From positions 6,758,001-6,822,000 of the forward strand of contig NC_088856.1 of the NCBI RefSeq assembly GCF_963853765.1: a stretch of 64,000 nt of DNA, written 5' to 3'. The translations under genes were made by a program, and so were the position numbers. This document shows positions 9,329 to 30,468 of the stretch, one piece after another. The DNA is from Magallana gigas. Lineage: Eukaryota. Within the stretch, counting starts at the first letter, position 1. Every line of letters starts with the position of its first letter. The notes below the pieces were generated by a model. It was given only the letters and a program-made list of their open reading frames with translations, was not told the origin of the DNA and did not search any database.

Positions 9329-12300
9329 TGGGTACGGAGGAGGTGATTCCCCTGCAGGGATCCCCCTGCCAGCTGGAGGTACAGAAGGACTTGGTGTACT
9401 ATGGTTTGAACTGTGGGGGACCCACTTATACCACCCTCAATGGTGTCACTTACACAAGCGAGCACAGACAGTTTGCCAGCTTCACCTACGATTTCAACTG
9501 TGGTAAGTGTTTTAATGTAACAAGAAAAAAGCTGTGTAGTACCAAAAGCTGTGTAGTACATGTACCAAAAGGGACCAACTTTGTCAGATATCGGTATCGT
9601 TGATTTCTGTTCTACCTGTAGTGTTACTTGTATTTTCAACTGCCTAACAATAACTGTACTAATGCCTCCCAAATACCTGTATTTATGCCTCTCACCTATC
9701 TTTTATTTATGCCTCCACTTACCTGAACTAATGCCTCCCAAATGCCTGTATTTATGCCTCCCACTTACCTGTATTTATGCCCCTCACCTACCTGTACTAA
9801 TGTATCCCACTTACCTATACTAATGCCTCCCACCTACCTGTATTTATGCCCCTCACCTACCTTTTATTTATGCCTCCCACTTACCTGTATTTATGCCTCT
9901 CACCTACCTTTACTAATGCCTCCCAAATGCCTGCTTCCCACCTACCTGAATTTATGCTTCCCACTTACCTGTACTAATGCTTCCCACCTACCTATACTAA
10001 TGCCTCCCACACCTACCTGTATTTATGCTTCCCACCTACCTGTATTTATGCCCCTCACCTACCTGTACTAATGTATCCCACTTACCTATACTAATGCCTC
10101 CCACCTACCTGTGCTAATGCCTCCCACACCTACCTGTATTTATGCCCCCACCTACCTGTACTAATGCATCCCACTTACCTATACTAATGCCTCCCACCTA
10201 CCTGTGCTAATGCCTCCCACACCTACCTGTATTTATGCCTTCAACTTACCTGTATTTATGCTTCCCACCTATCTGAACTAATGCCTCCAACTTACTTGTA
10301 TTTATGCCTCTCACTTACCTGTACCAATGCCTACCACCTACCTGTACTAATGTCTCCCACCTACCGGTATTTTTGCCTTCCACCTGTTCAAAAACTCACC
10401 ACACCATCAAATTAACAAATGAAAAGGCTGTAAGGAATTCTTTTTTTTAATTGTCATTGTGTAATTCCTTTTAGTTCAAGTCCTGCCTCGGAAAATTTTA
10501 ACATAGGCCTCAAAGGAAAACAAAAATGTAGATAGCACAGATGGACAAAGTTTGAGATCATGCATGAAAACTTCCATTTTAAAAATATTATCTTGACAGT
10601 TATATCTTATTATATATCTATCATTTTATGGCTCAAACGATGTAATAATTTGTGTCAGTACTAGGTGGCACATAGTCTGAAACCCACGGCCAGTCTTGTA
10701 TAGACATACTGACCATGGGCCAACTCTAAATATTCCTCTGTCTCATGAATATCAAACATCTCCAATCTGCCTTGATTAATTATAAAGCATAATACCTGTA
10801 GTTTTTGGAGCCATGAAAGCAGAGCTATGCTGTTGTTTATTAGTTCTGTATACAGTAGTTGACAAAACAATTCAGAATGATGTTTAATTGGATACTTACA
10901 ATGTGGGACAATTAATTACTGGATGATCAATATCTATTCTACAGGGTCCCGATGTTTGGCTTATGGAAAGAGTTATGGATTAGTGACCATTTATGAGCTA
11001 ATAAACAACACTCACAATGGATTTCTGTATGCCACGGTCAGAACAAAGTACACAGAACCCCTTGATGAGCAGAAAGTTATTTACACTGTAAGTTCATGAA
11101 CTTAGTTAGTGGTTAATGCTGAAAATATACCTCAGTCACCATCGCAATTCAGTAGTTTTAAATGTGCATGTAGTAAAGTCACTATGTTTAGTGAACATGA
11201 AGCAGACCTTTATGTTTTTTTATTTTCATAAGTTGATTATTGCAATTTTTAAGTTTAATAGCAAACAACACTTACAGACATATTTTCACCCATTATATTT
11301 TTTGCAATATACTGTTAACTGAACATGCAGAAAAATGCTGATTGCTGATGCTAATTATGGATACCGTATATTCGGTAATTTTCGCGATGATCTAATTTTT
11401 GCTTTATTTTGTGTGTGTGATCTCGTTTATGTCACAAATAATTGAATACGCAGAAATTATATCCTGTTAGTATCATTTTCCATAAAAAAAAATCTTTTTA
11501 CATCGCAAAAAATGACTGACGCAAATTAAAAAGAGATAATAGATTTTTCCCATTTTTGCAAATTTTGTGACTCACCAAAAAAAAGGATATATATGGTATT
11601 CAATAGCATAGTTATGTAGACATAAGCCTTATGACATTATCTATAGGTGAAGTCGCTACAGATTCCTGATGGACAGTATATACTACGCTTGCATTATGTC
11701 GGTAAAGGCTATAAAACACACAGCATTTCCTTTAACGGGCAATCCATTGCATCCCAGGTAAGAGTGGAATAGAGAATTTTAAAGTACTTCTGCATGTAAA
11801 ACAGATTTTAATTCAAAATATATTCCATAAACTTTATTTTTCTTTATGATATTGAAAAATAAATCAAAATTTAAGTGTGTATTCTTTTGGAGAACATATT
11901 TGTCATCAAATCTTTAAGGTGCTGAATATACTAAGCAGTTTTCAAATATCTATAGGTCCCCAGAACTTAGCTATAATTGTGTTTTACTATGTTGCATAGC
12001 TGTTACACAAAAAAAAACAGGTATTAACTGTTGGAGTTTTTTTTTGCTTGCTTGGAGAACAACAACATTTTGCTCTGTATTAATCATCTTCTTGAAACAA
12101 TGAGGTGTTGTTGCCTCTATGTTTGCTTTGATACCTATGATTTTGTTGTTACTACAGAATGCTTGGCCTGTTTTTAGAAAGAGGCCTATGATTTTGTTGT
12201 TGGCACAGGATGCTTGAATACAAAGTCCAATGATTTTGCATATTGTAGGTTGCTGCTGCCGGAGATAAAGTGATGGATATCGGGGAGCAGGGTCTGACAG

Positions 12301-30300: not shown

Positions 30301-30468
30301 TTTTTATTTTTTTGTAGATATAACCTTGGAACCTTTTACTTTGCCACTAGCTACTATGCTAAGGCAAAGTTCCAGTTTCAGGAGGCCTATGATGTCTACA
30401 AGGCCTTTCTCTCTGATGATCATCCGGACACACAGGCAGCCAAAAAGGCCCTAGAGGCAGTGCCTTAA
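9329..30468 (+). CDS. Multidomain protein: malectin-like, FBA, DUF4062, NACHT-like P-loop NTPase, TPR repeats (at least 1430 aa, 5'-incomplete)
   Basis: Exons: 9329-9502, 10945-11087, 11647-11757, 12249-12554, 12872-13042, 14268-14348, 14641-14764, 15424-15539, 15750-15852, 16678-16859, 17425-17538, 18237-18407, 19101-19211, 19536-19667, 19916-20111, 20688-20817, 21020-21189, 21483-21562, 21853-22047, 22493-22623, (23142-23150), 25063-25147, 25252-25449, 25912-26049, 26188-26333, 26919-27042, 28077-28196, 28508-28654, 29084-29325, 30318-30468. All junctions are GT-AG with matching phases, giving one open frame to TAA at 30468. Confidence 0.88.
9655..10385. repeat. Intronic minisatellite, unit about 23 bp, about 31 copies
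   Basis: Unit ATGCCTCCCAC(C/T)TACCTGTA(TTT/CTA). Confidence 0.9.
11364..11596. mobile_element. TA-TSD MITE (Tc1/mariner-pogo-like)
   Basis: TA|CCGTATA ... TATATGG|TA termini. Confidence 0.55.
13019..13430 (+). repeat. 51-bp minisatellite spanning the splice donor at 13042/13043
   Basis: Unit CTGGACACAGCACCGGACATACAG|GTGTGTATAACTCAGTGTACACAACAA, about 8-9 copies, with degenerate copies continuing to about 13800. Confidence 0.92.
14821..15282. repeat. 27/28-bp intronic minisatellite, about 17 copies
   Basis: Units GTTGAGATCATTGTTGTGTGATCAATG and GTTGAGAATCTTTATTCTGTGATCAATG. Confidence 0.9.
15840..16140 (+). repeat. Degenerate repeat of about 38-40 bp spanning the donor at 15852/15853
   Basis: Recurring (CTA)CAGGAT(C/A)T(A/G)GGTAAATAGGGGACACACTGTACAATT variants. 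Confidence 0.65.
16875..16988. mobile_element. 114-bp hairpin MITE
   Basis: Arms CAATCTGATTAAAATCGGATCCTTTGATCCGCTCAC / GTGAGCGGATCAAAGGATCTGATTTTAATCAGATTG, flanked by direct repeat TGTAC (16870-16874, 16989-16993). Confidence 0.75.
17950..18241 (+). repeat. 39-bp minisatellite spanning the splice acceptor at 18236/18237
   Basis: Unit ATTGATACGAACTGTTGATTCATTGCTGATATCTGACAG, about 8 copies, each ending in CTGACAG|ATTGA or a close variant. Confidence 0.9.
18390..18629 (+). repeat. 27-bp minisatellite spanning the donor at 18407/18408
   Basis: 9 copies of GATACCAGTGTTACTCAG|GTGTGTAAT (translates DTSVTQVCN). Confidence 0.95.
18776..18950. mobile_element. TA-TSD MITE (pogo/Tigger-like); second copy inverted at 32763-32937
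   Basis: TA|CAGTCAAACCTCG ... GTTCAACTG|TA; the interior matches the reverse complement of 32763-32937. Confidence 0.8.
19916..22623 (+). other. NACHT-like/STAND P-loop NTPase of gene 2
   Basis: Walker A GESGCGKS (spliced 20111/20688), Walker B LIIVLDALNQL, and downstream NPLYLRSLLDE. Confidence 0.85.
20101..20525 (+). repeat. Old degenerate repeat spanning the donor at 20111/20112
   Basis: About 7 recurrences of GG(G/A)AGTCAG|GTAT/GTAC variants after the exon end GGGGAGTCAG|GTATG. Confidence 0.55.
23538..23687. mobile_element. Long terminal palindrome of an unclassified non-autonomous element (body probably extends to about 24100)
   Basis: Imperfect arms of about 65 bp around the apex GAGGCTTTGCCGAG (23606-23619). 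Confidence 0.6.
24625..24841. mobile_element. TA-TSD MITE; related copy at 56962-57179
   Basis: TA|CTGTAGATTCCT ... AGGAATCTACAG|TA. Confidence 0.8.
27025..27715 (+). repeat. 36-bp minisatellite spanning the donor at 27042/27043, about 19 copies
   Basis: Unit CATTCCTCAGGTCCTCAAT|GTAAGTATCTAATAAAG; the first copy is the exon end CATCCACAAGTTCTTAAT. Confidence 0.92.
28508..30468 (+). other. C-terminal TPR repeats (TPR_12/kinesin-light-chain-like) of gene 2
   Basis: Repeated ALEL..EVLG..H..VA..LN.LG, EALAYY...L......G..HP.VA..L..IG.VY and YNLG..Y.....Y.KA...FQEA..V helical-pair patterns. Confidence 0.8.
29316..30236 (+). repeat. 34-bp minisatellite spanning the donor at 29325/29326, about 27 copies, two subtypes
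   Basis: Unit GCTAG|GTAAGCTCAACTCA followed by CATACACGGCTCATT or AACACTCCACTCACT. Confidence 0.92.

Follow-up and report, generated by a model that had tools for sequence, protein, structure and literature searches.

A conserved oyster gene combining lectin-type modules with a TeTIR-NACHT-TPR core in a single STAND protein

The window analyzed here, a stretch of 64,000 nt from Magallana gigas (NCBI RefSeq assembly GCF_963853765.1, contig NC_088856.1, positions 6,758,001 to 6,822,000 of the forward strand; coordinates below are those of the window), holds most of one oyster gene with at least 32 exons on the + strand. Its product is a soluble STAND protein (signal transduction ATPase with numerous domains) of about 2,000 aa, which consists, from the N- to the C-terminus, of a low-complexity N-terminus, a triple-repeat all-beta domain (the N-domain), a malectin-like domain, an F-box-associated (FBA) domain, a linker, a TeTIR (DUF4062) domain, a NACHT domain, and a helical domain with NPHP3-type tetratricopeptide repeats (TPR). 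A first-pass annotation, made by a model from the letters alone, had proposed a multi-exon + strand gene from 9329 to 30468. Its 3' end is confirmed by the stop codon at 30466-30468, and the motifs quoted at that time (GESGCGKS, LIIVLDALNQLDD, DDKYWGG, and TSNMWC) are all located in the window. The pieces named in the first pass also appear in their order among the stop-to-stop frames of the + strand. However, position 9329 is an internal exon start, and the gene goes on upstream via 8435-8606, 5242-6329, and 4405-4510. The domains named in the first pass were all recovered, but about 455 N-terminal residues encoded upstream of 9329, which contain a third beta-rich module, had been missed. The present gene model runs from 4405 to 30468 and has 32 exons, all with AG/GT borders, with 5,658 nt in frame, that is, 1,885 codons.

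RNA evidence for the region from 11600 to 17599 came from the contigs of three RNA runs and the raw reads of one polyA run. Eight GT..AG joints were observed in the contigs and in the raw reads (11757>12249, 12554>12872, 13042>14268, 14348>14641, 14764>15424, 15539>15750, 15852>16678, and 16859>17425), and unjoined contig ends coincide with the exon end at 11087 and the exon start at 18237. The joints that lead from the last FBA exon via the linker exon to the first DUF4062 exon are present in all three contig runs at the depth of the neighboring exons, and they are supported by 4 (15539>15750) and 7 (15852>16678) raw reads. Joining the RNA-defined exons results in a single open frame from the malectin-like domain through FBA and the linker into DUF4062. 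The first mate is on the − strand for essentially all raw reads of the polyA run, indicating transcription in one direction. In addition, the splicing of a 4,346-nt RNA contig (run X8) is identical to the model across the test region; judging from the lengths, this contig would begin with 40 nt of sequence that precedes exon 9329-9502 and would end 16 nt beyond the stop codon, and we infer that the exon it enters upstream of 9329 is 8435-8606. Taken together, the malectin-like, FBA, and DUF4062 exons lie on one spliced + strand transcript, as the first-pass annotation had assumed, and the RNA joints link the two groups of exons instead of assigning them to separate transcripts.

Among sampled words of the region 12249-22200, 73-77% were present in DNA runs that share one species label and 20-28% in RNA runs, including "oyster metagenome" metatranscriptomes; the latter share is similar to the share of exons. 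A gene on the − strand was considered and rejected, because the antisense open frames lie in repeats or opposite exons and the raw reads have essentially all one orientation. Low-depth RNA contigs also pass through introns at 12526-12885 and 16161-16704 (depth 5-16 vs 130-240 on exons) and are probably unspliced precursor RNA or DNA carry-over.

For the junctions without RNA, every phase-compatible GT/AG pair was scored against homologues. The resulting model aligns with the 2,054-aa Saccostrea protein LOC133184810 in one collinear BLASTP segment with 79.4% identity and gaps of only 2, 1, and 13 residues. The 13 additional Saccostrea residues are situated at the junction after exon 22493-22623, and the Saccostrea annotation points to a possible 13-codon micro-exon in intron 22624-25062, whereas Mytilus alignments need no extra exon. 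Three further exons are small and easily overlooked in a frame scan (10945-11087, 14268-14348, and 15750-15852).

The upstream part of the gene was recovered with the aid of homologues. A comparison of exon 12249-12554 with 1.84 billion representatives yielded 26 matching proteins, mostly exon-sized fragments. The oyster matches were exon-sized fragments only (the best was 92% identical and had 108 aa), and five long or full-length homologues came from other phyla. In these five, the exon aligns at residues about 655-800, so that roughly 650-730 residues precede it there. Homologue residues about 100-480 map to a 401-codon open frame at 5196-6398 (tblastn, E 1e-61), and another piece maps to 8435-8606. 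The Saccostrea echinata orthologue reveals an extra short exon at 4405-4510 (tblastn), and the spare base of this exon together with 5242-5243 encodes Ala, as in the Saccostrea orthologue. The first coding exon or exons were not found in the window: there is no ATGGG-initiated frame of at least 15 codons upstream of 5300 and no ATG frame with a phase-compatible donor within 3900-5242, and tblastn with the Saccostrea N-terminus recovered only 4405-4510. The first exon or exons of the gene lie outside the window, and the model is without its 5' end.

Two donor sites are located in tandem repeats. A 27-bp tandem repeat at 18388-18630 contains nine in-frame copies of the donor site that closes exon 18237-18407. 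Because the following exon begins with Leu-Glu, and this Glu (19104-19106) is the catalytic residue discussed below, use of a later donor would insert 9-residue units two positions before it; the orthologue alignment favors the first of the nine donors (18407). A 51/102-bp repeat at 13017-13418 starts at the donor of the FBA exon 12872-13042 and duplicates it; according to the RNA joints, splicing takes place at the first copy (13042). The depth of the contigs is increased between 13000 and 13400, which probably reflects copies of the repeat at other places.

In scans of single exons, Pfam Malectin was not matched by any window exon and the FBA and AAA_16 matches were weak, and therefore domain, fold, and family tests beyond single exons were run on orthologues in place of the spliced oyster protein. 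The FBA assignment, already proposed in the first pass, is firm. Three window exons match Pfam FBA (PF04300, E 5.4e-6 to 0.02), the score of the Saccostrea orthologue is 95 bits (cut-off 32.4), and an FBA profile of 11 family members matches the structures of FBXO2, FBXO6, and FBXO44 with E values from 3e-34 (FBXO2) to 6e-25. The ten-stranded beta-sandwich fold was tested on a Mytilus homologue, the oyster domain being split over five exons. The AlphaFold2 (AF2) model of this homologue (P0066) superimposes on the sugar-binding domain of Fbs1 (2e33_A) with Z 21.2 and a root-mean-square deviation of 2.0 A over 160 residues (Foldseek TM 0.79). In line with the first-pass annotation, no F-box family was found when six members, full-length or nearly so, were scanned with Pfam, and the 40 residues ahead of FBA form a charged helix. 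In Fbs1, Phe177, Tyr279, and Trp280 are essential for N-glycan binding (PMC4603797). According to a HMMER alignment to 1umi_A, Tyr279-Trp280 correspond to the Tyr-Trp of oyster DDKYWGG and Phe177 to the Asn of TSNMWC, exactly as read in the first pass. In the family as a whole, the three positions are occupied by His (also Phe, Tyr), by Tyr, Phe, or His, and by Trp, respectively; with the exception of one Mytilus paralogue, no member deviates from Trp at position 280, and all have an aromatic residue or His at position 279.

The malectin assignment is supported by the sequence profiles of the orthologues. Pfam Malectin (PF11721) matches 10 of the 16 family members (best E 2.2e-9), and the Saccostrea domain scores 24.6 bits alone against a cut-off of 23, and 19.0 bits in a whole-protein scan. 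A family profile of the region has only four PDB matches, all of them malectin entries (E 5e-4 to 4e-3), all of the closest clusters in a language-model comparison are malectin (0.90), and a conserved N-terminal strand and a D-x-x-LY..R motif align with malectin. Of the initial proposal of a malectin domain, the family relationship is supported by sequence, but neither a match by a single window exon nor a confident fold was obtained.

The third module, the N-domain (5244-6329), comprises 362 aa with three repeats. Its AF2 model is all-beta (predicted local distance difference test score, pLDDT, 83.9; predicted TM score 0.88), and its segments 2 and 3, of ~110 residues each, are alike (z 11 vs shuffles). 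A Pfam scan of the N-domain found no family. Foldseek on PDB gave TM 0.1-0.2, a wide VIA-align search gave phage tail-fibre tips as best match (Z 4.5) and three-fold beta-prism lectins at Z about 3, phage hypotheticals matched with TM 0.5 in ESM Atlas, a BFVD match combined E 8.5e-10 with a TM of 0.26, and language-model neighbors were at 0.85. These matches are leads only, and the family was therefore left unassigned; we treat the N-domain as a putative third ligand-binding-type module outside known families.

The DUF4062-NACHT-TPR core of the first-pass annotation was recovered by Pfam matches and conserved motifs. Two window exons match Pfam DUF4062, with E values of 3.4e-5 and 0.014, the orthologue reaches 50.8 bits, and the family profile matches the crystal chain of the TIR-like domain of TEP1 (11gz_A, E 1.3e-20). 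The view of DUF4062 as a TIR-like domain has in the meantime been borne out, since NADase activity of DUF4062 (TeTIR) has been shown for TEP1 and bacterial homologues; in TEP1 the catalytic residue is Glu1008, and the activity rises with concentration and depends on oligomerization (bioRxiv 10.64898/2026.05.01.722283; 10.64898/2026.09.21.753143). The same 2026 preprints report that TeTIR always lies directly ahead of a NACHT domain and that the catalytic Glu is absent from the NPHP3 TeTIR; one of them adds that most proteins have TeTIR at their N-terminus and that TEP1, with its extension, is the exception. In the oyster model, TeTIR occupies residues about 930-1095, and its putative catalytic Glu is residue 1056. 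We mapped the 220-residue chain 11gz_A onto TEP1 894-1113. TEP1 E1008 corresponds to the invariant Glu of SVTQLE, and F902, S905, R914, R942, W943, C959, R976, and E1008 are all identical in the oyster protein and invariant or nearly so in 16 members, whereas R908 is Lys in oyster. Mutation of each of these eight residues lowers the NADase activity of TEP1, to near background except for W943A (TEP1 TeTIR preprint work). The oyster TeTIR thus keeps the TEP1 active-site residues, and cleavage of NAD(P)+ is a plausible, putative activity.

NACHT (PF05729) scores 36.2 bits in the orthologue, compared with a cut-off of 26.7, and Pfam AAA_16 matches a window exon. Walker A (GESGCGKS, 20102-20701, split by a splice junction) is conserved in the family, as are the Asp (hhhhD) of Walker B (LIIVLDALNQLDD, 21135-21173) and the sensor-1 Arg in STLPGR. 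The C-terminal repeats are TPR_NPHP3-like (82-89 bits, cut-off 100) and TPR_12, NPHP3_N reaches 22.7 bits (cut-off 24.8), and Pfam scans of the window exons and orthologues found only TPR families and no leucine-rich repeats C-terminal to NACHT. Three assignments to known groups were rejected. Orthology to NPHP3 is not compatible with TPR_NPHP3 and NPHP3_N matches below the cut-offs and the presence of the catalytic Glu, orthology to TEP1 is contradicted by a different N-terminal extension and different C-terminal repeats, and a canonical NLR (NACHT-LRR) would have leucine-rich repeats instead of TPR.

No transmembrane segment is present, as in the oyster model and seven orthologues the mean hydropathy of 19-residue stretches is 1.61 at most. 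Instead of a signal peptide, orthologues with MG starts carry a lipidation motif: 16 of the 22 family sequences begin with MGSG.S, MGCG.S, or MGCSAS, the pattern of N-myristoylated and palmitoylated proteins; N-myristoylation calls for Met-Gly at the start and a small residue at position 6. These starts were found in mussels, clams, scallop, ark clam, cephalopod-like transcripts, Capitella, and amphioxus. The lack of both signal peptide and transmembrane segment had been noted in the first pass, and the sequences support a cytosolic, probably membrane-apposed protein. A precedent is FBXO27, which is N-myristoylated, resides on endomembranes, and gathers on ruptured lysosomes via glycoprotein binding (PMC6389600).

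Relatives that are full-length (1,900-2,130 aa) and have their domains in the same order are present in 10 or more species of five phyla. They comprise bivalves (Mytilus with three paralogues, Mercenaria, Mya, Argopecten, Sinanodonta, Tegillarca, and Saccostrea), the cephalopods Acanthosepion and Octopus, the annelid Capitella, the nemertean Lineus, and, among deuterostomes, the hemichordate Glandiceps, the echinoderms Anneissia and Amphiura, and three Branchiostoma species. The architecture is thus neither oyster- nor mollusc-specific. The domains are collinear, and the identity to oyster amounts to 62-71% for TeTIR, 54-64% for NACHT, 46-65% for FBA, and 27-40% for the malectin-like and N-domains. 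A maximum-likelihood tree of 16 members separates deuterostomes from lophotrochozoans and bivalves from cephalopods, and it pairs oyster with Saccostrea and groups this pair with scallop, all with strong support. The gene tree follows the species tree, which indicates vertical inheritance from a bilaterian ancestor. Altogether, judging from the sequences, this is an ancient, vertically inherited bilaterian orthologue group of low copy number (one to three copies were seen per species). Word-limited, non-exhaustive searches yielded no member from vertebrates, arthropods, nematodes, or cnidarians.

Database entries for the members carry the names "uncharacterized protein", "FBA domain-containing protein", "NPHP3", "TEP1", or "Y7407-like", and the "NPHP3" labels are automatic. 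Some Mytilus RefSeq records contain one ~1,980-aa protein; elsewhere, the locus is split into an "uncharacterized" protein of 1,117 aa and a "TPR repeat-containing protein DDB_G0287407-like" of 885-904 aa, and surveys of domain architectures therefore undercount the family. A full-text literature search found no publication joining an FBA domain with NACHT, DUF4062, or malectin, the architecture was absent among the top matches of a search for F-box-associated/PF04300 literature, and neither 2026 DUF4062/TeTIR preprint mentions FBA, malectin, or lectins. The claim of an undescribed architecture thus stands for the literature, but not for the databases, which already hold bilaterian orthologues under other labels: this is a conserved invertebrate gene family that is unstudied as an architecture.

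Table. Exons of the oyster gene in the window, with their content and the evidence for their borders
Feature	Position	Strand	Evidence
Upstream coding exon: acidic, Pro-rich linker ending ..PLPQRERP, aa 1-36 of model	4405..4510	+	tblastn of Saccostrea P0083 residues 155-190, 58% identity; AG/GT borders
All-beta N-domain (aa 36-398) with three repeats of about 110 aa, on one large exon	5242..6329	+	Full-length homologues all match (residues about 100-480, 35-40% identity); tblastn E 1e-61
Exon between N-domain and malectin-like domain, aa 399-456	8435..8606	+	Homologue-guided splice search
Malectin-like domain, first exon (..LVYYGLNCGG..)	9329..9502	+	Aligns to malectin N-terminal strand in family profile
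Malectin-like exon (..FLYATVR..)	10945..11087	+	3' end = loose RNA contig end before 11647
Malectin-like exon	11647..11757	+	RNA joint 11757>12249, 3 contig runs and a raw read
Malectin-like end, charged helical linker, FBA start (..IVGWSQNLLKN..)	12249..12554	+	RNA joints on both sides
FBA exon with TSNMWC, Asn 12959-12961 = Fbs1 Phe177 position	12872..13042	+	RNA joints; Pfam FBA; Fbs1 alignment
FBA exon, 27 codons	14268..14348	+	RNA joints 13042>14268, 14348>14641
FBA exon	14641..14764	+	RNA joints; Pfam FBA E 5.4e-6
Last FBA exon with DDKYWGG, Tyr-Trp 15438-15443 = Fbs1 Tyr279-Trp280	15424..15539	+	RNA joints; Fbs1 alignment
Linker exon, FBA to DUF4062	15750..15852	+	RNA joints: 3 contig runs and raw reads
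DUF4062/TeTIR exon 1: basic stretch, RVFVSSTFK, QERE Arg (TEP1 F902, S905, R908>K, R914)	16678..16859	+	Pfam DUF4062; RNA joints; TEP1 alignment
DUF4062/TeTIR exon 2: DLRWG loop, AICL Cys (TEP1 R942, W943, C959)	17425..17538	+	RNA joint 16859>17425; loose end after 17538 = start of 18237
DUF4062/TeTIR exon 3: GERFGW Arg (TEP1 R976), ends ..SVTQ	18237..18407	+	Pfam DUF4062; start RNA-supported; donor (first of nine) by homologue fit
DUF4062/TeTIR exon 4: catalytic Glu codon 19104-19106 (TEP1 E1008)	19101..19211	+	Homologue fit; TEP1 alignment
Exon between TeTIR and NACHT	19536..19667	+	Homologue fit
NACHT N-terminal exon, ends ..LLGESG (Walker A first half)	19916..20111	+	Homologue fit
NACHT exon, begins CGKS (Walker A second half)	20688..20817	+	Homologue fit
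NACHT exon with Walker B LIIVLDALNQLDD	21020..21189	+	Pfam AAA_16; homologue fit
NACHT exon with sensor-1 STLPGR	21483..21562	+	Homologue fit
NACHT C-terminal / helical exon	21853..22047	+	Homologue fit
Helical domain exon	22493..22623	+	Homologue fit
Winged-helix / helical exon	25063..25147	+	Homologue fit
Helical exon	25252..25449	+	Homologue fit
Start of TPR_NPHP3-type region	25912..26049	+	Pfam TPR_NPHP3 E 1.5e-9
TPR exon	26188..26333	+	Homologue fit
TPR exon	26919..27042	+	Homologue fit
TPR exon	28077..28196	+	Homologue fit
TPR_12 exon	28508..28654	+	Pfam
TPR_12 exon	29084..29325	+	Pfam E 2.1e-8
Last TPR exon and stop codon	30318..30468	+	Pfam TPR_10

Several features lie outside the recognized exons. 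Upstream of the first of them, a 410-codon open frame with a Cys-rich tail (1737-2966, +) has no Pfam match and is probably intronic. A neighboring gene (59483-63506, +) encodes BTB, BACK, and C2H2 zinc finger domains and a long acidic low-complexity stretch, and it has at least three exons (59483-61876, about 61985-62245, and 62703-63503). A 327-codon open frame without a Pfam match (36683-37663, −) lies in the most G+C-rich part of the window (0.42), and a run of 135 N (52913-53047) is present inside an open frame.

The explanation that we regard as the best one, and favor tentatively, is that a lectin-fronted TeTIR-NACHT-TPR STAND protein responds to a glycan cue with hydrolysis of NAD+/NADP+; by analogy with known systems, a cytosolic sensor of exposed glycans that drives NAD+ cleavage is plausible. 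The protein would work like TEP1 or a plant TNL. The NACHT-TPR part would be an autoinhibited nucleotide switch, oligomerization driven by NACHT would gather the TeTIR domains and lead to NAD+/NADP+ hydrolysis, and the lectin-type modules, lipid-anchored at the cytosolic face of a membrane, would supply the cue or the address. These modules would bind glycans that appear in the cytosol only upon rupture of endomembranes or retro-translocation of glycoproteins, or on invading microbes, in the manner of the myristoylated FBXO27. A more far-reaching version, which we consider rather unlikely, would be an ancestral bilaterian, membrane-anchored "exposed-glycan alarm", in which a head of three lectins would read lumenal or microbial glycans in the cytosol and, through NACHT oligomerization, trigger NAD+ destruction by a TEP1-type TIR-like NADase. 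This would be the sugar-ligand animal counterpart of plant TNLs, and the N-domain would represent a novel lectin fold with a relationship to the tips of phage tail fibres. Vertebrates, in which the same damage is reported by galectins and FBXO27, may have lost the family.

Several results weigh against a glycan-triggered NADase. The strong conservation (TeTIR 62-71% from oyster to amphioxus and crinoid) and the low copy number are unlike those of fast-evolving invertebrate immune receptors. In NACHT domains, Walker B is usually followed by an acidic pair (D-E). The Walker motifs, described as intact in the first pass, are so with respect to Walker A and the Walker B Asp, but all 16 members read D-A-L-N-Q-L-D after Walker B, with N-Q in place of the usual acidic pair, and judging from this motif ATP hydrolysis may be slow or rely on another residue. 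The Saccostrea model begins with MNDSSEEN and not with MG, and the oyster N-terminus was not found in the window. In the AF2 model, the malectin part is of low confidence (pLDDT <50 for residues 55-101), and the fold searches returned lists occupied by FBA matches. Not all residues of the Fbs1 pocket are kept, with Phe177 replaced by Asn in oyster and by His in most orthologues, and Lys281 by Gly. FBXO44, which has Tyr/Tyr/Trp at the three pocket positions, binds no sugar (PMC4603797), and thus the retained Tyr-Trp is no guarantee. Lastly, the isolated TTC41 TeTIR and full-length NWD1 and NWD2 have kept the Glu, yet they are inactive or nearly so in vitro (2026 TeTIR preprints).

A serious alternative, which we consider somewhat unlikely, is that the same architecture has a conserved housekeeping or scaffolding role, for example as a membrane-anchored organizer of glycoprotein quality control, trafficking, or cilia, with TeTIR as a regulated or weak enzyme or a nucleotide-binding module. 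The agreement of gene tree and species tree, the one to three copies per species seen, and the very high conservation across phyla would all be expected for such a role, and the gene is expressed in every RNA run examined, the runs not having been chosen for infection. NPHP3 is myristoylated and has an N-terminal Gly2 lipidation-type motif. Both the TPR region and the N-terminal lipidation motif of the family resemble NPHP3, and several human TeTIR proteins have no or only marginal NADase activity. However, the catalytic Glu is lost in NPHP3, but all eight TEP1 residues tested by mutagenesis are kept here, which argues for retained catalysis, and the lectin modules have no counterpart in NPHP3. 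It would also be unusual for a core housekeeping protein that limited searches found no vertebrate, arthropod, or nematode member. Altogether, the conservation pattern is explained by a conserved cell-biological role no less well than by an immune receptor engaged in an arms race.

Another serious but unlikely alternative is that the lectin-type folds no longer bind sugar and are protein-interaction or structural modules, as in FBXO44, while sensing is performed by the TPR repeats, the usual position of STAND sensors. The replacement of Phe177 and the loss of Lys281, the FBXO44 precedent, the weak malectin match, and the lack of a convincing lectin-family match for the N-domain (best Z 4.5; beta-prism lectins Z about 3) are in accordance with this view, whereas the invariant Trp280 position and the aromatic or His Tyr279 position, with the exception of one Mytilus paralogue, are not. 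In addition, three tandem carbohydrate-binding-type folds that have been kept for more than half a billion years are hard to attribute to chance. Exceedingly improbable is an artefactual fusion of a neighboring lectin gene and a DUF4062-NACHT-TPR gene read as one, a reading that the split Mytilus models (1,117 and 885-904 aa) might suggest but that is contradicted by the in-frame RNA joints from FBA via the linker to DUF4062 at equal contig depth in three runs and in raw reads, and by the full-length models of 1,900-2,130 aa in 10 or more species of five phyla.

TIR-like NADases in animal STAND proteins were recognized only in 2026, in TEP1. The family described here offers a TeTIR STAND member with recognizable putative input modules, that is, FBA, the malectin-like domain, and a third beta domain, and, being conserved from oysters to amphioxus, it is open to tests in a number of laboratory or aquaculture species. 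Should the lectin head bind glycans, the family would provide the first case of an animal STAND protein in which exposure of glycans in the cytosol is coupled to NAD+ cleavage, and it would link the field of lysosome damage (galectins, FBXO27) with TIR-type immunity. For annotation, the records that are labelled "NPHP3", "TEP1", or "Y7407-like", or are split in two, represent one distinct orthologue group.

Among the known systems, TEP1 shares with the oyster protein a TeTIR of similar sequence directly before NACHT, a large ligand-binding extension N-terminal to the effector, and C-terminal repeats. However, the extension of TEP1 consists of TROVE and vWA (RNA binding) and its repeats are WD40, whereas the oyster protein has the triple-beta, malectin-like, and FBA domains and TPR. 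NPHP3 and TTC41 have the same core order, TeTIR-NACHT-TPR, which is reflected in the partial matches to Pfam TPR_NPHP3 and NPHP3_N, but both lack lectin-type modules, and NPHP3 also lacks the catalytic Glu that is invariant in the oyster family. FBXO2, FBXO6, and FBXO27 (Fbs1-3) have the same FBA beta-sandwich (Z 21, about 32-36% identity) with the Tyr-Trp of the GlcNAc2 pocket and are likewise cytosolic, and FBXO27, which marks ruptured lysosomes, resembles the orthologues also in its myristoylation-type N-terminus. In contrast, the oyster family has Asn or His at Phe177 and Gly or Ala at Lys281, and it has no F-box, so that the output would not be an SCF (Skp1-Cullin-F-box) ubiquitin ligase but of the STAND NADase type. 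Pfam PF11721, which matches most family members, links the oyster domain to malectin and bacterial malectin-domain proteins. Malectin itself is a membrane-anchored di-glucose lectin of the lumen of the endoplasmic reticulum, whereas the oyster protein has neither a signal peptide nor a transmembrane segment. Lastly, plant TNLs and bacterial TIR-STAND proteins (Avs-like) also combine a TIR-type NADase effector with a STAND ATPase and repeats, and the oyster protein, as far as its sequence tells, would share their logic of activation by oligomerization; it differs from them in having the TeTIR subfamily, NACHT instead of NB-ARC, and an extra sensor-like region of 900 aa upstream of the effector.

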